From Octopus bimaculoides (taxonomy: Eukaryota), in NCBI RefSeq assembly GCF_001194135.2, contig NC_068991.1, forward strand, positions 16,146,438 through 16,206,991: 60,554 bases of DNA, read 5' to 3'. The notes beneath the pieces are model-generated. The model did not search any database. It saw only the letters and a list, made by a program, of their open reading frames with translations, and was not told the origin of the DNA. The position numbers and the translations under genes are program-made. How positions within the stretch are numbered: position 1 is the first letter of the stretch; every line of letters starts with the position of its first letter. This document shows positions 248 through 60,554 of the stretch, in pieces.

Positions 248-358
248 TTAATTACCAATACTCTTCCACGCATAGACGCCAACACTGATAAGAACACCGG
301 CTATTAAAACGCCAAAGGCTTGCCTCTTTGGGGTGCCAAAATATTCCACAATGGCTTC
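248..358 (-). CDS. BAX: BAX-like terminal coding exon with C-terminal membrane anchor and stop
   Basis: Acceptor ttttctttgtatttacAG|(358). Translates EAIVEYFGTPKRQAFGVLIAGVLISVGVYAWKSIGN then TAA (250-248), matching BAX DGLLSYFGTPTWQTVTIFVAGVLTASLTIWKKMG. Confidence 0.93.
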   Translation of the reverse strand, partial: EAIVEYFGTPKRQAFGVLIAGVLISVGVYAWKSIGN

Positions 359-591: not shown

Positions 592-690
592 CCATCCACC
601 TCGAGATAGAATCCAATCAGCAAGATTGTCTACTATAAAATTAATAACTAAGTTGATGATGGCTCGGATTAAAGGAATCCGGTCCAATGC
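592..690 (-). CDS. BAX: BAX-like exon encoding alpha6/BH2, phase 0 to 0, 99 nt
   Basis: Acceptor tttatatatttcAG|(690) and donor TGG|GTGAGT(591). Translates ALDRIPLIRAIINLVINFIVDNLADWILSRGGW, with the BH2 WIxxxGGW motif. Confidence 0.93.
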
Positions 691-2009: not shown

Positions 2010-2142
2010 CTTGATGGCCATTTTGTAGGCAAAGTAAAAGAACCGAACCACTATATCCCAAGTAAGGTTTACAGAGACAATAGCACTGGCAACATTGAGA
2101 AATGTATTGGGAATATCTTCAGGCTCTATTCTTGATACCAAA
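2010..2142 (-). CDS. BAX: BAX-like exon encoding divergent BH1, phase 2 to 0, 133 nt
   Basis: Acceptor tattctcttacAG|(2142) and donor AAG|GTGAGT(2009). Translates LVSRIEPEDIPNTFLNVASAIVSVNLTWDIVVRFFYFAYKMAIK, aligning to BAX VFFRVAADMFSDGNFNWGRVVALFYFASKLVLK. Confidence 0.92.
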
Positions 2143-3078: not shown

Positions 3079-3392
3079 AGCTAGATGAACAGCACAGAAG
3101 TATAATAATAAGAGGCTTAGTGTAAAGACATCCCCTTGCTTCACACCACTTTTGACCTCAAATGATGGTGATGCTGACCCATTTGATAACAATGAACTCT
3201 ATGTTGTCATGAAGAGAGCAAATGATAGCGAGGAAATTCTTCAGAGATATGATTCATGAATTCGATGTGATGATTCCTCTCTCATGGGTATCTCTCTATG
3301 GGAACCTAAGCTGACGAAGAGAAAGAATACAGGTGACAGATAAAGAAATAACTATCAGGTATGGACGTTTGCTGCAGATTACTATTTACTCT

Positions 3393-3586
3393 TGTACCTG
3401 TATTTCAAAGGGTCAGCCTTGTCACACTGTGTCACGCTGAATATCCCCGAGAACTATGTTAAGAGTACACGTGTCTGTGGAGTGCTCAGCCACTTACACG
3501 TTAATTTCACGAGCAAGCTGTTCCGTTGATTGGATCAACTGGAACCCTCGTCGTCGTAAGTGACGGAGTGCCAACCAACAACAACA
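3393..3586 (+). mobile_element. SINE family B, 5'-truncated
   Basis: 3' half of the B consensus with (CAA)n tail; 12-bp TSD actatttactct (3381 / 3587). Confidence 0.9.
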
Positions 3587-3745: not shown

Positions 3746-4137
3746 GTTGTTGTTGTTGTTGGCACTCCGTCGCTTACAACGTCGAGAGTTCCAGTTGATC
3801 CGATCAACGGAACAGCCTGCTCGTGAAATTAATGTGCAAGTGGCTGAGCACTCCACAGACACGTGTACCCTTAACGTAGTTCTCGGGGATATTCAGCGTG
3901 ACACAGTGTGACAAGGCTGAGCCTTTGAATTACAGGCACAACAGAAACAGGAAGTAAGAGCGAGAGAAAGTTGTGGTGAGAGAGTACAGCAGGGTTCGCC
4001 ACCATCCCCTGCCGGAGCCTCGTGGAGCTTTAGGTGTTTTGGCTCAATAAACACTCACAACGCCCAGTCTGGGAATCGAAACCGCGATCCTATGACCGCG
4101 AGTCCGCTGCCCTAACCACTGGGCCATTGCGCCTCCA
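3746..4137 (-). mobile_element. SINE family B, full length (tRNA-derived head, (CAA)n tail)
   Basis: Head GGCGCAATGGCCCAGTGGTTAGGG...GGTTTCGATTCCC carries Pol III A/B boxes; 13-bp TSD cctacataggaat. Confidence 0.92.
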
Positions 4138-4472
4138 CCTACATAGGAATAACCAGTGCCTTATTAACACAATGACATATTTTTGCGGTAAGTACTGTGC
4201 TTGGAAGTACAAATCAATGAAAAGCAATTAAGTTCACACTATAAGAGATAATTCATGCAGAAAATGTTAATGAGTACCTTTTATTCCACCAGACAGTAGT
4301 GCAAATAGTGGCAGGTGGGTAGAGACAATGATGGGGTGTTGTAACATGACCTGACAAGTGATTTCTCACTCATATGTGGGTGAGAATCCTAGATGTTTTC
4401 CAGATATTGTCTTCCCTTTTTTTTTTATTGTTTACAGTATATTTTGTTTTAGTTTTAATCTTATCGTTTATT

Positions 4473-7224: not shown

Positions 7225-7434
7225 TTTATTCCCTCCAGAGAGAGAGTGGGAAAGAAAGAGAGAGGTAAAGAGAGATACAGTTAAAGGAGAGAGGAAGAAA
7301 GAGAAAAAAGGGTAGCTAGAAAGACAAAAGAGCAAAAAAAGAGAAGTAGAGATAAGAAAGACAGCTGGAGAGAAAGTGAAAATCAGAGAGACACAGAGAA
7401 ATGAACTAGACAATGAGAGAGAGAGAGAGAGAAT

Positions 7435-7468
<34 letters not shown>

Positions 7469-7830
7469 ATAGAGAGAGAGAGAGAGAGAGAGAGAGAATG
7501 GAGAGAGAGGATAGAGAATAGAGAGAGAATAGAGAGAGAGAGAAAATAGAGAGAGAGAGAATAGAAGAGAGAGAGAAAATAGAGAGAGAGAATAGAGAGA
7601 GAGAGAGAGAGAGAGAGTAGAGAGAGAGAGAGTAGAGAGAGAGAATAGAGAGAGAGAGAATAAAGAGAGAGAGAGAATAAAGAGAGAGAGAGAATAAAGA
7701 GACAGGCAGATAGACAGATAGATAGACGGAAAGAGCAAGAGAGAGCCTAGAAGATATAGGATGAGAGATGTGGGCTAGAGAGCAAATGAGATATGAGAGT
7801 GAGAGAGAGAAAAAGAGATAGAGACAAACA
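7225..7830 (+). repeat. ~600-bp (AG)n/GAATA purine-rich tract
   Basis: Direct sequence; source of the LSLSLS ORFs. Confidence 0.95.
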
Positions 7831-7859
7831 GACAAATACTACTGAAGTGAGTCACTTAC

Positions 7860-7944
7860 TCTTGCAGTCTTTGGTCTCCATCTAATTCGTCACCAATACA
7901 CCGTAGAGCACGTCCTATTTCTTCTAGCTGAGACATCGGTGGAC
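7860..7944 (-). CDS. BAX: BAX-like exon encoding BH3, phase 1 to 2, 85 nt (absent from ORF track)
   Basis: Acceptor tattttgatccAG|(7944) and donor GA|GTAAGT(7859). Translates GPPMSQLEEIGRALRCIGDELDGDQRLQ(D), a canonical BH3 LxxIGDELD. Phases match both neighbouring exons. Confidence 0.93.
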
Positions 7945-8838: not shown

Positions 8839-8985
8839 CTGTTGGTGTGTCTGGTTCGATGAGGTTGGACTCTTGCAGAGGATTTTCAAAGCCTTCATTT
8901 TCCATTCTGTCATGGATGAACTGGTTCAGCAAACACCGCGCCTGGTTGCCCACGTCATCTCTGTTTAAGTTTTTCCTGGGCGGTT
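8839..8985 (-). CDS. BAX: BAX-like apoptosis regulator, internal coding exon (helix alpha1), phase 1 to 1, 147 nt
   Basis: Acceptor ttttatttctgcAG|(8985) and donor G|GTAAGT(8838). Translates PPRKNLNRDDVGNQARCLLNQFIHDRMENEGFENPLQESNLIEPDTPT; LLNQFIHDR matches the BAX alpha1 LLQGFIQDR pattern. Confidence 0.9.
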
Positions 8986-10530: not shown

Positions 10531-11361
10531 TTAACCCTTTCGTTACAATAGTTCTGACCAAAAACACTGCCTTTGTTTCAATTAATTTCAAAGATTATAA
10601 AAAATTTAGTAAAAATAATTGTCATTATCAATCTGATGATTAAGGCAGCAATCTGGCAGAATTGTTAGCATGCCAGGCAACATGCTTAGCAGCATTTTGT
10701 CCGTCTTTCTATATTCATCATCATCATCGTTTAACGTCCGCTTTCCATGCTAGCATGGGTTGGACGATTTGACTGAGGACTGGTGAACCAGATGGCTACA
10801 CCAGGCTCCAATCTGATTTGGCAGAGTTTCTACAGCTGGATGCCCTTCCTAACGCCAACCACTCCGAGAGTGTAGTGGGTGCTTTTATGTGCCACCGGCA
10901 CAAAGGCCAGTCAGGAGGTACTGGTAACGGCCACGCTCAAAATGGTGTATTTTACGTGCCACCTGCACAGGAGCCAGTCCAGCGGCACTGGCAACGATCT
11001 CACTCGAATGTCTTTTCACATGCCACTGGCACAAGTGCCAGGAAGGCGATGTTGGTAACAGTCACGCTCAAATGGTGCTCTGAGTTCAAATTCTTTCACA
11101 GTCTACTTTGTCTTTCATCCTTTCAGGGTCAATGAAGTAAGTACCAGTTATGTACTGGGGTTAATATAATTGACTAGCACCTCCCCTAAAATTTAAGACC
11201 TTGGGCCTATAGTAGAGAGGATTATTAATCTAATGATTGGAACATAAAATAACATGAAATTTAGATGAAAAGTGTTTTAGATCACAGCACAAGGGGCTGG
11301 TATTAAAACAGAAAGCTTGTATCATAGAACCAAGTGGCAAGGTTAGTACCGAGAGGGTTAA
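10531..11361. mobile_element. TTAA-flanked piggyBac-like MITE (E2) carrying nested SINE C and family D
   Basis: TTAA|ccctttcgttac ... gtaccgagaggg|TTAA. SINE C at 10640-11225 is split by D at 10722-11075. Confidence 0.75.
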
Positions 11362-12354: not shown

Positions 12355-12540
12355 ATCATCATCGTTTAACGTCCGCCCTCCATGCTAGCATGGGTTGGAC
12401 GATTTGACTGAGGACTGGTGAAACCGGATGGCAACACCAGGCTCCAATCTAATTTGGCAGAGTTTCTACAGCTGGATGCCCTTCCTAACGCCAACCACTC
12501 AGAGAGTGTAGTGGGCGCTTTTACGTGTCACCCGCACAAA
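12355..12540 (-). mobile_element. family D element whose internal unit is expanded into a minisatellite
   Basis: catcatcatcgtttaacgtccgcc... consensus runs directly into the 60-bp array. Confidence 0.85.
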
Positions 12541-13403
12541 AACGGCCACGCTCGAAATGGTGTCTTTTATGTGCCACCCGCACAAGAGCCAGTCCAGGGG
12601 CACCGGCAACGATCCCGCTCGGAAGATTTTATGTGTCGCCCGCACATGAGCCAATCCACGGGCACTGGCAACGATCCCGCTCGAGAGACTTCATGTGTCA
12701 CCCGCACAAGAGCCAGCCCAGGGGCACCAGCAACGATCCCGCCCGAAAGATTCCATGTGTCGCCCGCACACGAGCCAGCCCAGGGGCAANNNNNNNNNNN
12801 NNNNNNNNNNNNNNNNNNNNNNNNNNNNNNNNNNNNNNNNNNNNNNNNNNNNNNNNNNNNNNNNNNNNNNNNNNNNNNNNNNNNNNNNNNNNNNNNNNNN
12901 NNNNNNNNNNNNNNNNNNNNNNNNNNNNNNNNNNNNNNNNNNNNNNNNNNNNNNNNNNNNNNNNNNNNNNNNNNNNNNNNNNNNNNNNNNNNNNNNNNNN
13001 NNNNNNNNNNNNNNNNNNNNNNNNNNNNNNNNNNNNNNNNNNNNNNNNNNNNNNNNNNNNNNNNNNNNNNNNNNNNGCCAGCCCAGGGGCACCAGCAACG
13101 ATCCCGCTCGAAGAAATTTCATGTGTCACCAGCACAAGAGCCAGTCCAGGGGGACTGGCAACGATCTCGCTCGAAAAACCTCATGCGTCACCCGCACAAG
13201 AGCCAGTCCAGGGGCACCGGCAACGATCCCGCTCGGAAGATTTTATGTGTCGCCCGCACATGAGCCAATCCACGGGCACTGGCAACGATCCCGCTCGAGA
13301 GACTTCATGTGTCACCCGCACAAGAGCCAGCCCAGGGGCACCAGCAACGATCCCGCCCGAAAGATTCCATGTGTCGCCCGCACACGAGCCAGCCCAGGGG
13401 CAA
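12540..13403 (+). repeat. GC-rich ~60-bp minisatellite interrupted by an N gap
   Basis: Unit ~ttttatgtgtcacccgcacaagagccagtccaggggcaccggcaacgatcccgctcggaaga, about 4 units left and 5-6 right of the gap. Confidence 0.92.
12790..13076. other. assembly gap (others: 15619-16490, 17752-18125, 23596-24170, 25021-25688, 44748-44842, 53265-53433, 54500-54584)
   Basis: N runs; most abut (TA)n or other repeats. Confidence 1.
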
Positions 13404-13569
13404 ATTGTAAAACAGTGTTTACTCAAACCATCAAGAATATTATGCTATGTTAATCAGAAAAACATTACTGTTTATATAACAGAGGAGAATTTTACATGCT
13501 GCCTCTCTGCTGTTGCAAAACATTGACACTAAGGTGTGAAACTCAAACTTAAGTCTATCATTGTCATCA

Positions 13570-14188
13570 TCATCATCATCATCGTTTAACGTCTGCTTTC
13601 CATGCTAGCATGTGTTGGACGAAGCCAGAAGGCTGCACCAGGCTCCAGTCTGATCTGGCAGAGTTTCTACAGCTGGATGCCCTTCCCAATGCCAACCACT
13701 CTGAGAGTGTAGTGGGTGCTTTTACGTGCCACCGGCACGAAGGCCAGGCAGGCAGTACTGGCAACGGCCACGCTCTAAATGGTGTATTTTATGTGCCACT
13801 TGCACAGGAGCCAGTCCAGCGGCACTGGCAACGATCTCGCTCGAATGTCTTTACAAGTGCCAGGAAGGCAACGCTGGGCACAAGTGTCATCACGATTTTG
13901 CTTTTGCTTGCCACGACAGGTCTTCGCAAGCCGAGTTTCATGTCCAATGAAGGAGACGACATTGGCATGGATGCCAGTCGTCGAATTTAGTTCGATTTCG
14001 ATTGCCTCAACAGGTCTTTGCAGGCGGAGTTTAGTGTCCAATGAAGGAAAGGTACACATAGGTGGGCTGGCCACACTCCTGACAAAGGCCTTGGATTTAG
14101 GTCTCACTTGGCTTGCCAGGTCTTCTCATGCACAGCATATTTCCAAAGGTCTCGGTCAGAAGTCATCGCCTCGGTGATGCCCAAAGTT
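13570..14188 (-). mobile_element. RTE-clade LINE 3' fragment (last RT codons + 3'UTR + (GAT)n tail)
   Basis: Its 13920-14188 part is the reverse complement of 35180-35430, which follows RTE RT coding sequence. It is contiguous with the family D motif, linking D to the RTE 3' end. Confidence 0.8.
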
Positions 14189-15618: not shown

Positions 15619-16611
15619 NNNNNNNNNNNNNNNNNNNNNNNNNNNNNNNNNNNNNNNNNNNNNNNNNNNNNNNNNNNNNNNNNNNNNNNNNNNNNNNNNN
15701 NNNNNNNNNNNNNNNNNNNNNNNNNNNNNNNNNNNNNNNNNNNNNNNNNNNNNNNNNNNNNNNNNNNNNNNNNNNNNNNNNNNNNNNNNNNNNNNNNNNN
15801 NNNNNNNNNNNNNNNNNNNNNNNNNNNNNNNNNNNNNNNNNNNNNNNNNNNNNNNNNNNNNNNNNNNNNNNNNNNNNNNNNNNNNNNNNNNNNNNNNNNN
15901 NNNNNNNNNNNNNNNNNNNNNNNNNNNNNNNNNNNNNNNNNNNNNNNNNNNNNNNNNNNNNNNNNNNNNNNNNNNNNNNNNNNNNNNNNNNNNNNNNNNN
16001 NNNNNNNNNNNNNNNNNNNNNNNNNNNNNNNNNNNNNNNNNNNNNNNNNNNNNNNNNNNNNNNNNNNNNNNNNNNNNNNNNNNNNNNNNNNNNNNNNNNN
16101 NNNNNNNNNNNNNNNNNNNNNNNNNNNNNNNNNNNNNNNNNNNNNNNNNNNNNNNNNNNNNNNNNNNNNNNNNNNNNNNNNNNNNNNNNNNNNNNNNNNN
16201 NNNNNNNNNNNNNNNNNNNNNNNNNNNNNNNNNNNNNNNNNNNNNNNNNNNNNNNNNNNNNNNNNNNNNNNNNNNNNNNNNNNNNNNNNNNNNNNNNNNN
16301 NNNNNNNNNNNNNNNNNNNNNNNNNNNNNNNNNNNNNNNNNNNNNNNNNNNNNNNNNNNNNNNNNNNNNNNNNNNNNNNNNNNNNNNNNNNNNNNNNNNN
16401 NNNNNNNNNNNNNNNNNNNNNNNNNNNNNNNNNNNNNNNNNNNNNNNNNNNNNNNNNNNNNNNNNNNNNNNNNNNNNNNNNNNNNNNNNNCTATCAAGTG
16501 ATCACAAAGTAATATCAACCTTTACTTGTTTAAAAAAACACACAAAAAGGTCAGAGAAAAAAACGATATTTTACTTTGTATTTATTGATTAAAAAAATGT
16601 GGATTTCCTAC

Positions 16612-16657
16612 CTTGTGTAGATTTGATCATGGTGCAATGGACATTCAAGGAATACAT
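16612..16657 (-). CDS. candidate start-codon exon of BAX (MYSLNVHCTMIKSTQ-E, or from the second ATG at 16630)
   Basis: In-frame ATGs at 16657 and 16630 run to CAAG|GTAGGA(16611) in phase 1; G+AA gives Glu on joining exon 8985. It lies ~400 bp downstream of the p53-site cluster. No homology support. Confidence 0.3.
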
Positions 16658-17710: not shown

Positions 17711-18254
17711 CTGGCACATTAAGTCTAAAAAGTATATAAATGCATATAACGNNNNNNNNNNNNNNNNNNNNNNNNNNNNNNNNNNNNNNNNNNNNNNNNN
17801 NNNNNNNNNNNNNNNNNNNNNNNNNNNNNNNNNNNNNNNNNNNNNNNNNNNNNNNNNNNNNNNNNNNNNNNNNNNNNNNNNNNNNNNNNNNNNNNNNNNN
17901 NNNNNNNNNNNNNNNNNNNNNNNNNNNNNNNNNNNNNNNNNNNNNNNNNNNNNNNNNNNNNNNNNNNNNNNNNNNNNNNNNNNNNNNNNNNNNNNNNNNN
18001 NNNNNNNNNNNNNNNNNNNNNNNNNNNNNNNNNNNNNNNNNNNNNNNNNNNNNNNNNNNNNNNNNNNNNNNNNNNNNNNNNNNNNNNNNNNNNNNNNNNN
18101 NNNNNNNNNNNNNNNNNNNNNNNNNATATATATATATATATATATATATAAAATGGTATTTTTGCTGCAACTTGAATGTTTAGACCACAATGTAGTCTGC
18201 TGTGGCATGTTGAGTATACGACTACTTCACTGCTCCACTTCACATTTCTTCAGC

Positions 18255-19344: not shown

Positions 19345-19640
19345 ATAAACATCAAAACATTGCATAGAGTGGGCAGAAGACCAAAGAGATTTATGGACAC
19401 ATTCCACTCATCTCTAGTGATATTGCTCAGTCCAGGGTAAGCTTTGCCGGTTACTGCGTTCATGCTGAACAACCTGATACCATATCAGATGATGTATTTT
19501 AGAGACTAGCGCACCCCAATAGAAGACACAGACTACTCATCTACACTGATGTTATTGGCAAAGACACACAACAGAAAATTGAGGACCTACCAAAGCTAGC
19601 CGGGGAACTGAGATTCCTAGCATGGCAGGCTATGACATCT
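19345..19640 (+). mobile_element. decayed non-LTR retrotransposon RT C-terminus (RTE-like)
   Basis: QNIA*SGQKTKEIYGHIPLISSDIAQSRVSFAGYCVHAEQPDTISDDVF*RLAHPNRRHRLLIYTDVIGKDT resembles the RxRFAGHC...LLW...RGR post-RT region. Confidence 0.7.
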
Positions 19641-19732
19641 TGGTTGCGGCCACTTGAAGCAGAATGTCTTCTATTTGTCTTGTAAGTGTTGCGGAGATGT
19701 TGTATACAAATCATATTTACATACGCTGTGCG

Positions 19733-22597: not shown

Positions 22598-24672
22598 AGA
22601 CTAAACAATATACAATTCTCTTTATATACAATTTCTTTGTGCATGCATGTGTGTATTATGAGGGGTGGCATCTTTAGTAACTGACAGTTTCCTTTTCTCT
22701 CTTCCTGAATTTCTTAATTGCCTCTGTGTACATACATTAATACATATGTATATATTTACACATACATGCATATACACACATATTTACATGTATGTACAGA
22801 AAAATAAACATGAATATACATATAAATACACGTGTATATACATCATTTAAACATCTGTCTTTAATACTAGCAAGGGTCAGATGGTTTGACAGGATCTAAC
22901 ATGGTAGAGGACTCTATTGTGCTGCAATGTCTGTTTTGACATGGTTTCTCTGGCAGGAAGCCCTTCCTCATTAGGGTGTAACGAGTGCTATTTTCATGAC
23001 ATGAGTACTGGTGAAGTCACCAAGTAACTCACAAGACAAAGAAGAGACCCTTGACTGAGTAGGGTTGGTGTAGAAGGGGAAATGATATTATGCAAGATGG
23101 TGGGGAGCTAAAGTAATGATAGAAGGACAGGCACAAGTGTCTTGCAATAGAAAAGATACATGGTTACCCTACAGTAAATAAGAGTGAGCACCAGTAGCTG
23201 GAAAGAAGACGAGGGTGACAATGAGAAATCAGACCATATTGTTGAGATTCATGAACATGTGTAAAGGAGAGAATATAGACGAACCGAAAGGGTGTGCGGA
23301 CACATTTCCATCATTGCTTTAACATCCACTTTTCAATGTTTGCATGGGTTAGATGGAATTTCTATAGCCAAATGCCCTTCCTGTCACTAACACTCACCTC
23401 TTTCCAAGGGAGATAATATTGTCCTATGCAGAGCCATATCCACAGATTACTGGAAATTAGGGAACACACACACACAAGGGAAAGGTTGATAGTGTTTTCA
23501 ATGTTTTGGCTCTGTTACCTCCACCAGATTGTCTGACAAAAGTAACTGAGCCAAAACTTCAAAGTCACACACACACTATATATATATATATATATNNNNN
23601 NNNNNNNNNNNNNNNNNNNNNNNNNNNNNNNNNNNNNNNNNNNNNNNNNNNNNNNNNNNNNNNNNNNNNNNNNNNNNNNNNNNNNNNNNNNNNNNNNNNN
23701 NNNNNNNNNNNNNNNNNNNNNNNNNNNNNNNNNNNNNNNNNNNNNNNNNNNNNNNNNNNNNNNNNNNNNNNNNNNNNNNNNNNNNNNNNNNNNNNNNNNN
23801 NNNNNNNNNNNNNNNNNNNNNNNNNNNNNNNNNNNNNNNNNNNNNNNNNNNNNNNNNNNNNNNNNNNNNNNNNNNNNNNNNNNNNNNNNNNNNNNNNNNN
23901 NNNNNNNNNNNNNNNNNNNNNNNNNNNNNNNNNNNNNNNNNNNNNNNNNNNNNNNNNNNNNNNNNNNNNNNNNNNNNNNNNNNNNNNNNNNNNNNNNNNN
24001 NNNNNNNNNNNNNNNNNNNNNNNNNNNNNNNNNNNNNNNNNNNNNNNNNNNNNNNNNNNNNNNNNNNNNNNNNNNNNNNNNNNNNNNNNNNNNNNNNNNN
24101 NNNNNNNNNNNNNNNNNNNNNNNNNNNNNNNNNNNNNNNNNNNNNNNNNNNNNNNNNNNNNNNNNNNNNNATACATATATATATATATACATATATACAA
24201 CGGGCTTCTTTCAGTTTCCATCTACCAAATCCACTCACAAGGCTTTGGTCGGCCCGAGGCTATAGTAGAAGACACTTGCCCAAGATGCCACGCAGTAGGA
24301 CTGAACCCGGGACCATGTGGTTGGTAAGCAAGCTACTTACCACACAGCCCCCATGTAATTTGCACACCTGTATAATTTAAGCAGGTGATTTTCAGGATAA
24401 AATTTGTTAAAAAAACAGCTTCTACTCATGTAAAATTTCTGTTTAAAAGGTATCACATTGAAAGTTATTAAATTACAAAATGTTTGTGTTGTTTATGGCT
24501 CTGCGGAGTTGTGGTTATGCTTAATCAATCGAATTGTCCTTTATGTTTGAAGTTGATGCGGTCATCTGACAAAAATGGTTTCTTTGCAATGATGTAATGT
24601 TTTCATTAATAATCAATTAAGAAGTCGCTTGAAAAGGCCGTAATGAATTGACACCTGTATTATTGTTACTCA

Positions 24673-24704
<32 letters not shown>

Positions 24705-26116
24705 GAAAGAAGGTTTGAAAATGCACTTAATTTTAAAAATATTTATTTACTTAACCGGTTTCACTTTTTTAGAAAAAGATTATCAAAAGTCTTTGAGAAT
24801 AATAAAAAATGTTAAAAAACAGTTTGAGTATTAAAATGCATATATACATTCTTTGATGATAAAATATATTTAAAGTATAAAGCTTTGTATGAACTTTGTA
24901 GTGTTACATACTGATTGTCACACATTCTCTGATATTAAGATGAAATTGTTAAAAACAGTGTATGAAAATACACATATGGAAAAATACATATACATATTCT
25001 TATACATATTCTTTGATAATNNNNNNNNNNNNNNNNNNNNNNNNNNNNNNNNNNNNNNNNNNNNNNNNNNNNNNNNNNNNNNNNNNNNNNNNNNNNNNNN
25101 NNNNNNNNNNNNNNNNNNNNNNNNNNNNNNNNNNNNNNNNNNNNNNNNNNNNNNNNNNNNNNNNNNNNNNNNNNNNNNNNNNNNNNNNNNNNNNNNNNNN
25201 NNNNNNNNNNNNNNNNNNNNNNNNNNNNNNNNNNNNNNNNNNNNNNNNNNNNNNNNNNNNNNNNNNNNNNNNNNNNNNNNNNNNNNNNNNNNNNNNNNNN
25301 NNNNNNNNNNNNNNNNNNNNNNNNNNNNNNNNNNNNNNNNNNNNNNNNNNNNNNNNNNNNNNNNNNNNNNNNNNNNNNNNNNNNNNNNNNNNNNNNNNNN
25401 NNNNNNNNNNNNNNNNNNNNNNNNNNNNNNNNNNNNNNNNNNNNNNNNNNNNNNNNNNNNNNNNNNNNNNNNNNNNNNNNNNNNNNNNNNNNNNNNNNNN
25501 NNNNNNNNNNNNNNNNNNNNNNNNNNNNNNNNNNNNNNNNNNNNNNNNNNNNNNNNNNNNNNNNNNNNNNNNNNNNNNNNNNNNNNNNNNNNNNNNNNNN
25601 NNNNNNNNNNNNNNNNNNNNNNNNNNNNNNNNNNNNNNNNNNNNNNNNNNNNNNNNNNNNNNNNNNNNNNNNNNNNNNNNNNNNNNNNATCTTATTTTTG
25701 TTTACTTTTCCGAAATGAATCAGATTTTTCTTTTCCTTTTATTAGATAAACATTTTTATTTTCAAGAATACTATTTATTAGTTAATTAGACGATGGTGCT
25801 GAGGAAACAAAGAAGAAAAAAAGCAGTACCTGCTATTAGTATCCTTATCTATAAATGTTGATTTGATGGCAGAATTCTGGCTTAAGCAACCCCATATAAC
25901 CCCTCGTAAATTTTTTATCTTTTGGAATTTTTAGAAAATGTTTGCATATGTGTAGTCTACACATTAGAATTCATGATTATGAAAAAAAAAATGTTTGTGT
26001 GTGATTTAAGGGCGATTTAGTTGTTATTTTTAGCACATCTGTCAATCACCCGATACCTTCCTTGTTTCTTTGTCACTGTAACATAAATTGATGTTTTTCT
26101 ATATTTTTCTCCTTAT

Positions 26117-31928: not shown

Positions 31929-32470
31929 TTAACTCTTTAGTGTTTAAATTGGTCATATCCGGCTCATGTATGCTACTTGTTTATACTCTAGCCTGCCAGA
32001 TCCAGCCTGTCACATCTTTCTTTCAATGCTATTATAAAATACACAATCATCATTATCATCATCATTCGTTTAACGTCCGCTTTCCATGCAAGCATGGGTT
32101 GGACGATTTGACAGAGGACTGGCGAGCCAGATGGCTGCACCAGGCTCCAATCTGATCTGGCAGAGTTTCTACAACTGGATGCCCTTCCTAATGCCAACCA
32201 CTCCGAGAGTGTAGTAGGTGCTTTTACGTACCACCGGCACGAGGGCCAGTCAGGCAGTACTGGCAATGGCCACACTCAAATGGTGTTTTTTACGTGCTAC
32301 CTGCACAGGAACCAGTCCAGCAGCACTGGCAACGACCTCGCTCGAATGTTTTTTCATATGCCACCGGCACAAGTGCCAGTAAGGCAACACTGGTAAGCAT
32401 GATTAATTAAAAATAATGTGAATGAAAAATCATTACATTTGACAGAATAATGTGAATGCTAAAGGGTTAA
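31929..32470. mobile_element. E1 TTAA-MITE containing a family D insertion (32055-32395), itself inside an E2 MITE
   Basis: TTAA|ctctttagtg ... gaatgctaaaggg|TTAA; the flanks rejoin as ggtcagt-TTAA-aacagg. Confidence 0.8.
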
Positions 32471-44711: not shown

Positions 44712-44974
44712 TAGGTGCAGGAGTGGCTGTGTGGTAAGTAGCTTGCTNNNNNNNNNNNNNNNNNNNNNNNNNNNNNNNNNNNNNNNNNNNNNNNNNNNNN
44801 NNNNNNNNNNNNNNNNNNNNNNNNNNNNNNNNNNNNNNNNNNAGTCCCACTGCGTGGCACCTTGGGCAAGTGTCTTCTACTATAGCCTCGGGCCGACCAA
44901 TGCCCTGTGAGTGGATTTGGTAGACGGAAACTGAAAGAAGCCCGCCGTATATATGAATATATATATATACATAC

Positions 44975-53264: not shown

Positions 53265-54304
53265 NNNNNNNNNNNNNNNNNNNNNNNNNNNNNNNNNNNN
53301 NNNNNNNNNNNNNNNNNNNNNNNNNNNNNNNNNNNNNNNNNNNNNNNNNNNNNNNNNNNNNNNNNNNNNNNNNNNNNNNNNNNNNNNNNNNNNNNNNNNN
53401 NNNNNNNNNNNNNNNNNNNNNNNNNNNNNNNNNNCAAACACAATGTCCGTGCGTGTGAATATCGAATGACCCCATTACTGAAATATGGCTCGTAAATTAG
53501 TTAAAATAACAAAATAAAGTCATTAAATATTAAATATTTCCGACGAGTGAAGGTGTTTTGCAAGTTCTCCTTAGCAGCTGATGCGCATCTTTAAACAGCT
53601 GACCTTATATGAGTTTAGTTGCCTGTGTACAAACAACAGGTCACCGACACACGGATACGCTGGACCTGAACGTGTTCGCTGGGTTTGCTAACACCCTTTT
53701 AATCTTTAAGTGAAAGTGACTTTAGATAATGTAGTCCTTGATATATCGCTGCAAAGACGAAACAGTCACAAATAGAATATGCCTTTAATCACACGTCTGC
53801 TCAATCAATGTTGACACAGAGCTGAACGACAACAACAATCTGATCAGAAAATAATGGACTTAACAAAAACAAAACGTATGTAGTATAAAATAAACTAACA
53901 GGGATCCAAAGTAACTCCAATCAGATTTGACATGTCTATCAACTGGTTAAATTTTGTAGAAATTTAGTTTAAAACCTGAAAACCTGATCAGAAAAGCAAT
54001 AGACTTAAATAGTAGAGATCAAAGGTTTCTATATTAGCACCGTTCACCATTAACAAGTTTGCCAGTGGTTACTAAAATTTTCATAGTTGGCATGAAGCAT
54101 TAATAAACTTCTTATCTTTTTTTACCTAACGTTCATTTTAAAAAATGGTTAAGCCTTAGTGTTTTACAAGAAGTGCATAAGAAGAGGGGAAATGAATGAA
54201 AAAATAAACTAATTATACTCGAAAATGACTGAACCGATTATAATACCCTTTGACATAGATTTCTAAACCTTCACAACAAAAACTTATTGACTATATATAT
54301 GAGC

Positions 54305-54351
<47 letters not shown>

Positions 54352-56329
54352 CATGGAGAGAGAGAGAGAGAGAATAAGGAAGTAGGTGGTAAAAATTAAA
54401 AACTGTGTGTGTGTGTATATATATTGATATATATATATAAAATGCTTAATCGTCAGAAGTCATTAAGTTGACAATCCAGAATTAATTATAGAGCAATTTN
54501 NNNNNNNNNNNNNNNNNNNNNNNNNNNNNNNNNNNNNNNNNNNNNNNNNNNNNNNNNNNNNNNNNNNNNNNNNNNNNNNNNNNNTATATATATTTAAACT
54601 CAGATTTTGATGTCGTTTGATAAATGACATGCACGAAATTCTCGGTGAAGTCACTTTTTTAAGAGGGAGAGAGACAAAATTCATGAAAACAGTATCATTG
54701 CTAAGTGTTGTTTAGCCCCTGGACAGCTGATGGAGTAAACCTACTCACAATAAAAATGAATCCACCCTCGACTATCCCTTATTTCCATATATTTTTCTTC
54801 ACTTTCATCTGTTCATTCGCTTATGTTTCCCCCCGCCCCACATAAGCGTTTTGTCTGTCCTTGTGTTGTCCCCTCTGTGTTAGGCCTTTATGGCTGGTGT
54901 AGGTGCAGTATATAATAAAGACCGCCTAATCTAATGCATCATCGTTCATTATTTTAAAGACAGAAGACGGTTTTATGGAAATTTGACTGTTATTTCTCAC
55001 AGATCGAGCAACCATTTAGAGGCTATTTCGCTAATAGCAAACAAAACATGGATGAAGTGTGTGGGGTAGGTAGAAAATATTCTAACAGCAAAAGAGAAAA
55101 AAAAAACCAAGGTGCTGTTTACTAACCAAAATAGCAAAAGCCAAAATGTTGAACAAGAAATAAAATTACAGAAGACAGAAGAAAAAAAACACGCAAGGAA
55201 CGAAAAAGATCAGATTTTATATAAAAAATATATTGTCTTGGTAATATTACTAGAAGCAAACATTACTAGAAAACAGGAAGTAAATTGAGGTTGATCTCAT
55301 TGCTTCTTTTTTTTTTAATATCGACCTGAGATTTAGATTTTTATAAGGTAGAGTGGGGGTTGGAGGTTGTGAGTAACATTTCCCAAGGACATTCTAACGA
55401 TGTTAGAGGAATTAAGGTGGTTTCAGGTGAGAAATAAAACCGCCACACCAAATCATAAAATAATAGTTTTTTTGTAAAGATTTTTTTTTTTAAATATTAG
55501 GCTAATATATCGTATTGTTCGAGTCGATCTGTTCAACAATATATTAGGTACATGACCACATACTGTCACACACGCTGAAGCAACGAGGGAGGAAAACGAG
55601 CCTGTACATGGTCGCACGAAATGCCATAAATAGCAGCCAAACCCCTTCTTAACTCATATACACTGTCGTCTTAAAAGAAAAATGAAGATATGTTAGATGA
55701 TTTAATCTTGAATATATAGAGAAAAAAATACTTGTGGGCTGACCTGGGGGTTTAACAACAACTACAACTAATACGTTGTTAGAGAAAAGGGGCAATATAG
55801 AATAATGCATAGAATAAACACTGTAACTAGATGAACATGGTTTAACGCCTTTGTTCATAGGCGTATGAGATCAGAACTGACCTGGGGCTAAATTACAACA
55901 CTAATAATATCTGGTTAGTTAGTTGGTAGTGCAAAACTTCATAAACAGGCATCATTGAACGAAGATAGCAAGTGCTTGTTGGCGGAGCCAGCAATGGGCG
56001 GTGTAAGATAAGAAAGGTCACCGCTGCTGCAAAGTGGTAGGGAGATCATAAGGAGTCGATATAGAGGACAAGCTGATATTTAAGAAAGGAAAGATTCAAA
56101 TCAAAAACTGACAAGGGTATGATGAGGTGGGTATACTTAGGAAATTCAGTGAAGAGGTGTAATGAGTAGGGAAGCTGGTCTTGTCACGTAAGAAGGTAAC
56201 CATCCCAAAGAAGAAATTTAGTGGAAATAAGACCTAAAATATATATATATATATATAAACTGAATAATAAATATTTTAAATTTAGGCATTTGGCGAGCTA
56301 TCTTGAAGGGAGACATTCAGCCGATTATA

Positions 56330-59600: not shown

Positions 59601-60554
59601 ACTACATATACACAGATGTGTGTGTGTGTATATATACATATATACACTCTTGCACACACTTAAAAAGAAAGTGAAAGACTATTTGCAACAGCGAGTGTTT
59701 AACGGCAAAATTAAATATTTGTTGTGAGTTGTTGAAGACTATAATCAGACTACATAATCATGTTACTAATCACTTGAGTATAAGTATTTTCATTAAGAAA
59801 ATAGTTCTTTTCTGGTTAATTTCTTTTTTTTTTTTTACATTGTTTTCGTTTTATACAACACTTTTCCCTCCTAGCCGCTGTCCATTTTTTTTTCCAGACG
59901 ATAGCATTGGCAAGAAGAAAAGAATAGCGTAAAAAATAAAAACGTAACACAACGTGAAAGAGTAACACATGAATATAGTAAGATAAGTCTGACTGACTGA
60001 TAGATGACAAGCGAAAAAACAGATCGACTTACTAGCCCGTATTTTTCTCTCCTCGAGATCCATGGTATTTCGTGAAAAAACGTAGTTTTAGACTGTATGT
60101 TTAATATATATATATTTCTGTGTGTGCGTATATGAGTTTTCCACTTTCTTTCGATTATAAATATATCTGTTTATATATAAATATCTTTTTTTTTTAGCTT
60201 CCCACTCGCTTGCTCATTAGGTACGACCCATGAATTACAAGTCCATGTGTATGCTGGAAGCTAATGCTAAAGTGCCCGACACGTGGCGCCACCACACCAA
60301 TTAGCAAAATACTTGCGGGGAGACAATTAAATGACAGGAGCAGATAACTCTTGTCATATGTTTCGCTGAGTTTTATCTCTTCATAGACAAGGAAAAAGTA
60401 TTAGAGACCAGTGTCTTCTATTATAGCCCCGGGCTGACCAAAGTTCTGTGAGCGTATTTAGTAGAAGGAAAGTAAAAGAAGCCTGTCGTGTGTGTGTATG
60501 CATGTATGTACGTAAAAAAAGACATTTATATATAGATAGATGTATGTATGTATA

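Follow-up and report, generated by a model that had tools for sequence, protein, structure and literature searches.

The BAX gene of Octopus bimaculoides encodes a rewritten BH1 corner in which the Gly, the Arg and the partner Asp102 of the canonical groove have all been replaced, and comparison across coleoids indicates that the resulting W-D form of BH1 has become fixed in the lineage, where strong purifying selection preserves it in octopuses, argonauts and cuttlefish. BH1 N-W-G-R is among the most conserved features of the Bcl-2 family. The gene was already annotated as BAX; what is new, as read from sequence, is the selectively maintained rewiring of the BH1 corner in coleoids ("coleoid-wide" here meaning the octopods and cuttlefish sampled, with Nautilus and true squids outside the sample), and literature searches found no earlier description of this BH1 variant of cephalopod BAX. 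Replacement of Gly, Arg and Asp102 under purifying selection provides a natural test of the groove contacts needed for activation, dimerisation and pore formation. Coleoid BAX could in addition show how compensatory changes re-register a binding site, and the variant bears on the wiring of apoptosis in cephalopods, about which, to our knowledge, almost nothing is known experimentally.

The window, by which we mean the whole stretch of 60,554 nucleotides analysed, is eukaryotic genomic DNA with long introns, microsatellites, dispersed repeats and several N-run assembly gaps. The core coding sequence of BAX lies on its minus strand in five exons with AG/GT at all junctions, and splices into a single open frame of 190 codons plus stop that is identical to the matching part of the NCBI entry "apoptosis regulator BAX isoform X2 [Octopus bimaculoides]". 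The coding exons are as follows.

8839..8985, minus strand: exon 2, N-terminal helix alpha1, PPRKNLNRDDVGNQARCLLNQFIHDRM..., common to all isoforms
7860..7944, minus strand: exon 3, carrying BH3 (GPPMSQLEEIGRALRCIGDELDGDQRLQ; EEIGRALRCIGDELD)
2010..2142, minus strand: exon 4, alpha3-alpha4, BH1 and the start of alpha5, with AG acceptor at 2144-2143 and GT donor at 2009-2008
592..690, minus strand: exon 5, end of alpha5, alpha6 and the first half of BH2, stopping directly after the GGW Trp codon
248..358, minus strand: exon 6, rest of BH2, alpha8, the C-terminal membrane anchor AFGVLIAGVLISVGVYAWK and the stop codon TAA at 250..248
16613..16657, minus strand: alternative first coding exon of isoform X3, MYSLNVHCTMIKSTQ
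19592..19714, minus strand: alternative first coding exon of isoform X1, MICIQHLRNTYK...SPASF
60034..60063, minus strand: alternative first coding exon of isoform X4, MDLEERKIRA

The isoforms differ at the extreme N-terminus only, with at least three alternative first coding exons within the window; the first exon of a fourth isoform was not found within it. Given the first exons at 16657..16613, 19714..19592 and 60063..60034, the BAX gene (248-60063, minus strand) takes up nearly all of the 60-kb window, in which a stop-to-stop ORF scan showed no further convincing protein-coding gene. Exon 5 ends in GGT GGA TGG, followed immediately by gt, at 592, and O. sinensis and Argonauta share this junction; an intron that splits BH2 just after the GGW Trp is a conserved feature of the Bcl-2 family (PMC7527217).

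The introns hold several further elements. N runs lie at 12790-13076, 15619-16490, 17752-18125, 23596-24170, 25021-25688, 44748-44842, 53265-53434 and 54500-54584; they touch no coding exon and account for the very low GC seen in the composition profile. The intron between the BH3 and BH1 exons contains an inverted repeat of 190 nt (arms 3386-3575 and 3758-3947, 92% complementary, 182 nt between the arms), after which comes a tRNA-like, SINE-looking stretch at about 3990-4140 in which ARAGORN called no tRNA. A long CT-rich, microsatellite-like tract (7225-7840, minus strand) lies directly downstream of the donor site of the BH3 exon, and a dispersed repeat family with similar ORF fragments (GEPDG.TRLQSDLAEFLQLDALPNANHSESVVGAF...) recurs on the plus strand at about 10773-11132, 12418-13526, 13553-13987 and 32112-32393.

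The octopus gene is the BAX orthologue of coleoid cephalopods. The Pfam Bcl-2 profile PF00452 scores 56.7 bits against a cut-off of 31.4, with residues 73-165 covering profile positions 1-100, and phmmer against the PDB returns BAX at E = 2e-26 and all other proteins at 4.5e-11 or weaker (Bcl-xL and BAK at about 1e-10). All database relatives are named BAX. The initial annotation, which described the protein as BAX-like, was right in this. The BH3 segment, LRCIGDELD, is identical to that of other mollusc BAX, conforms to the L-x3-G-D-E motif and lies in a predicted helix spanning residues 66-80, and the protein ends in a hydrophobic tail anchor with basic residues (AFGVLIAGVLISVGVYAWK), predicted as a helix at 175-200 with pLDDT of 57-71. 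The AlphaFold2 model of octopus BAX has the Bcl-2 fold, with a mean pLDDT of 82.1 and eight main helices (nine DSSP segments); Foldseek places BAX structures on top, with BAX, BOK, Bcl-xL and BAK all at probability 1.00. When octopus BAX and the canonical BAX of Haliotis are modelled from the same alignment, pLDDT over the tail helix is 57-71 versus 72-91, and neither model fits full-length BAX well or better than the other does (TM about 0.6 for both); the comparison does not set octopus apart from canonical BAX. In the models alpha5 begins at the Trp, the residue before it being T115 in octopus and N119 in Haliotis.

Within exon 4, window positions 2063..2043 (minus strand) read ACT TGG GAT ATA GTG GTT CGG, that is T-W-D-I-V-V-R, in the frame ...NVASAIVSVNLTWDIVVRFFYFAYKMAIK. 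The presence of TWDI(VVR) in place of BH1 NWGR, the central claim of the initial annotation, is thereby confirmed to the base, and its description of an undamaged gene holds as well, with BH3 (LRCIGDELD), BH2 (GGW), frame and splice sites all intact. The phmmer alignment sets nltwdivvrffyfay of octopus against nfnwgrvvalfyfas of human BAX with W107 kept; of the N-W-G-R signature the Trp alone survives, in T-W-D-I of octopods and in S-W-D-T of cuttlefish. Two nested features describe the change.

2043..2063, minus strand: variant BH1 core T-W-D-I-V-V-R, with Asp at 2057..2055 (G108D), Ile at 2054..2052 (R109I) and Arg at 2045..2043 (A112R)
2043..2078, minus strand: remodelled alpha4-alpha5 corner V-S-V-N-L-T-W-D-I-V-V-R, with, relative to human, F100V, D102V, G103N, a one-residue loop deletion, N106T, G108D, R109I and A112R

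This corner sets coleoid BAX apart from its relatives. Among non-cephalopod mollusc BAX (n = 38) the BH1 Gly is present in 38/38 and the Arg in 37/38. A profile search of 1.84 billion cluster representatives gave 150 of BAX/BAK type (50%-identity clusters), of which 147 were informative: W-G-[R/K] occurs in 131/147 and W-D in none of the 147, and most of the proteins that depart from Gly are extra paralogues. The suggestion that the Arg has moved by about one helical turn to the A112 position fits these data as far as residue positions go, since that column is basic in every coleoid sequence (R in octopods, K in cuttlefish) and in 0/147 of the other clusters; the functional half of the suggestion is taken up below. 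Among alignment columns with at least 80% conservation in other molluscs, 11 differ in all five cephalopod sequences, and five of these fall in human positions 100-109 (F100V/I, D102V/A, G103N/S, G108D and R109I/T). Five of the six conserved columns in this interval have changed, W107 being the sole survivor, versus 6/79 elsewhere (Fisher p = 7.9e-5), and the one-residue deletion in the alpha4-alpha5 loop and A112R/K come beside them. Overall divergence is ordinary: identity to human BAX is 34% for cephalopods and 37% for other molluscs, and cephalopod-gastropod identity is 52.5% versus 53.3% between gastropods and bivalves. A general rate acceleration was rejected as the cause on this ground, and the clustering of changes at 100-109 against such a background points to concerted local remodelling rather than general drift.

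The remodelled corner recurs throughout the coleoids sampled. L-T-W-D-I-V-V-R is found in O. bimaculoides, O. sinensis and O. vulgaris (90%-identity clusters) and in Argonauta hians, and F-S-W-D-T-V-V-K in the cuttlefish cluster, which comprises Acanthosepion pharaonis and two transcriptome-derived forms; none of the members of the 90% clusters bears Gly at the BH1 position. Database searches recovered from cephalopods no BAX-type protein other than the product of this variant gene. Orthologous exons taken from the O. sinensis and Argonauta genomes conserve every splice site. By the Nei-Gojobori method O. bimaculoides differs from O. sinensis by seven synonymous and zero non-synonymous changes (dS 0.058), while dN/dS is 0.064 against Argonauta and about 0.06, with dS saturated, against cuttlefish. 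Octopus encodes the Asp by GAT, Argonauta and cuttlefish by GAC, and the Ile and Val codons also vary synonymously; such synonymous change at these very codons, together with the low dN/dS, argues that the variant residues are maintained by selection. Because the variant is present in both Octopodiformes and Decapodiformes, it most likely arose in the coleoid stem. The initial annotation had left open whether TWDI is lineage-wide. The answer is W-D-[I/T]-V-V-[R/K] in octopuses, argonaut and cuttlefish, and the concerted remodelling, the loss of D102 and the acidic residue that another BAX lineage, that of teleost baxb, has at the Gly position go beyond what it had noticed.

These data bear directly on two readings in which the genomic Asp would not be what it seems. 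That the motif is an assembly or annotation artefact, or that the gene is a decaying pseudogene, is refuted: nothing was found in favour of either, the N-run gaps of the window sparing every coding exon, the motif recurs in four independent genome assemblies and many transcriptome assemblies, and intact frames and splice sites with dN/dS of about 0.06 speak against decay. One cuttlefish form is indexed in 58 blocks, and the 10 places listed are all contigs of RNA-seq runs, from which it follows that the BAX gene is transcribed.

A second such reading, and one that we hold to be very improbable, is that A-to-I RNA editing of GAU/GAC to GGU/GGC restores Gly in part of the transcripts, which would make the genomic Asp one of two states between which the protein can switch. 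With GAT or GAC as the Asp codon in each of the four lineages, a single A-to-G change, at window position 2056 in the present gene, would give Gly, and heavy RNA recoding is established in coleoids; nothing further speaks for editing. Against editing, Asp is encoded in 14/14 of the cuttlefish RNA-seq contigs fetched (of more than 60), though these were retrieved by exact protein match and edited forms would be missed, and the 90% clusters, likewise retrieved through the unedited protein, have no Gly-bearing member. Moreover, Ile or Thr at position 109 cannot be edited to Arg, and ADARs disfavour a 5' G, the neighbour that the target A has here.

We then considered what the variant corner may do to the BH3-binding groove. 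The groove residues of human BAX include G108, V111, A112 and L113, and A112C has served for a disulphide lock of alpha9 into the groove (PMC9004659). In BAX crystal structures R109 and D102 contact BH3 ligands directly, D102 being the partner of R109 in a polar network that holds the BH3 Asp (PMC4650713), and either of the human substitutions G108V and R109D is by itself a potent inhibitor of BAX homodimerisation and function (PMC9004659). As judged from the aligned residues, coleoid BAX is without both protein members of the D102-R109 network and without the Gly; new are an Asp in the first alpha5 turn and, four positions on, a basic residue. The alpha4-alpha5 corner (BH1) was rebuilt, most likely in the coleoid common ancestor, and then frozen: the ancestral D102/G103/G108/R109 became V(A)/N(S)/D/I(T), with the loss of a single loop residue and the gain of R/K at 112. 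The new i/i+4 pair of D108 and R/K112 may have replaced the D102-R109 clamp, with R/K112 on the groove floor and its long side chain able to reach the retained BH3 Asp. The protein would still be a tail-anchored, BH3-in-groove pro-apoptotic effector with altered groove electrostatics, and its ligand specificity or activation threshold would probably be altered too.

The reading that we prefer is such a compensated relocation of the BH3-Asp clamp, from D102-R109 to D108 with R/K112, the protein remaining a working effector, and on comparative grounds we give it an even chance. A functional effector with an altered groove is favoured by the strong constraint under which the new residues, the alpha5-alpha6 hairpin and the tail anchor all stand. 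Set against the relocated clamp is that loss of G108 and R109 could be disabling rather than compensated, since the human substitutions at either position block dimerisation and function. A side chain at 108 should also crowd the small residue of an incoming BH3, and an Asp there could repel a BH3 Asp or Glu; the coleoid BH3 has no change that matches the loss of the Gly.

If the loss were indeed disabling, coleoid BAX would be without efficient BH3-in-groove homodimerisation and would act mainly as a membrane-anchored BH3 donor or sensitiser, neutralising pro-survival Bcl-2 proteins, or would oligomerise through another interface, with pores left to BAK or BOK. This main rival, in essence the alternative raised in the initial annotation, we regard as possible though on the whole unlikely. 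The effects of G108V and R109D (PMC9004659) count for it, as do the precedent of Trichoplax Bak, whose BH1 is without Gly and which releases no cytochrome c (PMC8998228, PMC7527217), the fully canonical and conserved coleoid BH3, and Bak-annotated transcripts in the squid Euprymna (PMC9389742). Purifying selection, however, extends over the whole fold, variant groove residues included, and the D plus R/K pair, the alpha5-alpha6 hairpin and the anchor are kept in octopods and cuttlefish despite saturated synonymous divergence. The basic residue newly acquired on the groove floor, too, resembles compensation and not decay, and a BAK that could serve as back-up effector was not recovered from cephalopods by a profile search in which 8000 word-sharing candidates were scored.

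That search used a 13-sequence BAK profile and recovered BAK from bivalves, gastropods, a chiton, annelids, nemerteans and vertebrates; among the 8000 candidates scored there was no named cephalopod BAK, in a database that includes Argonauta, a cuttlefish and three Octopus proteomes. The gap could stem from divergent sequence, from the limits of the search or from real loss, and Bak transcripts have been reported in Euprymna (PMC9389742). Among the sequences met along the way was a BAK-like transcript, P0254 (loci L007/L008; Logan SRR22428381 and SRR22428377), in which BH1 reads S-W-S-R, with Ser in place of Gly; among named sequences it comes nearest to gastropod BAKs (46-49% identity).

The new residues might also serve structural housekeeping only, with a Thr/Ser N-cap, an Asp in the first turn and an Asp-Arg/Lys i/i+4 bridge re-stabilising the start of alpha5 after the loop deletion, BH3 binding being independent of R/K112 and function unchanged. 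Helices are classically stabilised by an Asp in their first turn and by i/i+4 acid-base pairs, and the start of alpha5 at the Trp in the models, with T115 (octopus) or N119 (Haliotis) just before it, and the normal overall evolutionary rate agree with such a role. We nevertheless find it quite improbable: R109 and D102 contact BH3 ligands (PMC4650713) and G108 and A112 line the groove (PMC9004659), and a change of all four without an effect on binding is unlikely.

The boldest proposal is that the only BAX-type gene of the coleoid class encodes a groove unable to make the Gly-packing and Arg109-Asp contacts, such that either the relocated clamp would have co-evolved with a different BH3 specificity or the protein would be a BH3 donor without canonical homodimerisation, an editing toggle from Asp to Gly being the most extreme and least likely form. 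As a whole we rate this proposal decidedly unlikely.

Compared with canonical BAX (human and mouse, PDB 1F16 and 4BD2; Haliotis, Mytilus and Argopecten), coleoid BAX has the same fold and domain order, and octopus BAX is 51-57% identical to other mollusc BAX. Common to both are alpha1, the BH3 segment LRCIGDELD, W107, FYFAYK, the alpha5-alpha6 hairpin, GGW, the tail anchor and the BH2-splitting intron. The two part at BH1, where canonical W-G-R-V-V-A stands against W-D-I/T-V-V-R/K, with coleoid BAX lacking D102 and G103 and having a loop one residue shorter. The human substitutions G108V and R109D fall on the same two positions, but they are single engineered or tumour changes, whereas the coleoid state is a fixed multi-site combination that includes a new basic residue.

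In other BAX-family paralogues the Gly or the Arg was lost independently, giving W-E-R/N, W-K-T, W-S-K, W-A-R and W-G-T. The BH1 Gly is likewise gone from the gastropod BAX-like proteins of Bulinus (W-K-T, P0167), Physella (W-S-K, P0139) and Elysia (W-A-R, P0067). These proteins are divergent extra copies; in Bulinus and Physella they stand beside a canonical BAX (P0026 and P0016), and the BH3 of these two variants is without the canonical G-D core; searches recovered no canonical BAX from Elysia chlorotica itself. A second catfish BAX (Ictalurus, P0086) reads W-G-T, with Gly kept and Arg lost. Catfish BAX was considered as a functional precedent for the loss of R109 and rejected, the crystallised protein (5W63) being canonical and W-G-T belonging to a different paralogue.

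The protein trBcl-2L4 (trBak) of Trichoplax adhaerens is, like coleoid BAX, without the BH1 Gly, being a multi-BH pro-apoptotic protein with BH1 ISWRR. An altered groove has been proposed for it (PMC8998228), and by experiment it brings about no MOMP and behaves as a BH3-only-like sensitiser (PMC7527217). It differs from coleoid BAX in being Bak-like and in having Arg, not Asp, at the Gly position.

The closest likeness at the Gly position itself is with teleost baxb-type proteins (P0122, P0195 and P0189), which are acidic there as coleoids are, with W-E-R in the tarpon and cichlid proteins named "BCL2 associated X, apoptosis regulator b" and W-E-N in pipefishes; the comparison indicates that the acidic residue arose independently in the teleost baxb lineage. 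Unlike the coleoid gene, teleost baxb is a paralogue beside canonical baxa; it retains the preceding D-G and, in most species, R109, and its position 112 is not basic. Papers on zebrafish baxb (zBax2) describe it as pro-apoptotic and report less camptothecin-induced apoptosis in baxb mutants (PMC6736209, PMC3920936). With W-E-R read in tarpon and cichlid and activity reported for the zebrafish protein, teleost baxb would speak for tolerance of an acidic residue in place of the Gly, a partial precedent, R109 being kept, for coleoid BAX.
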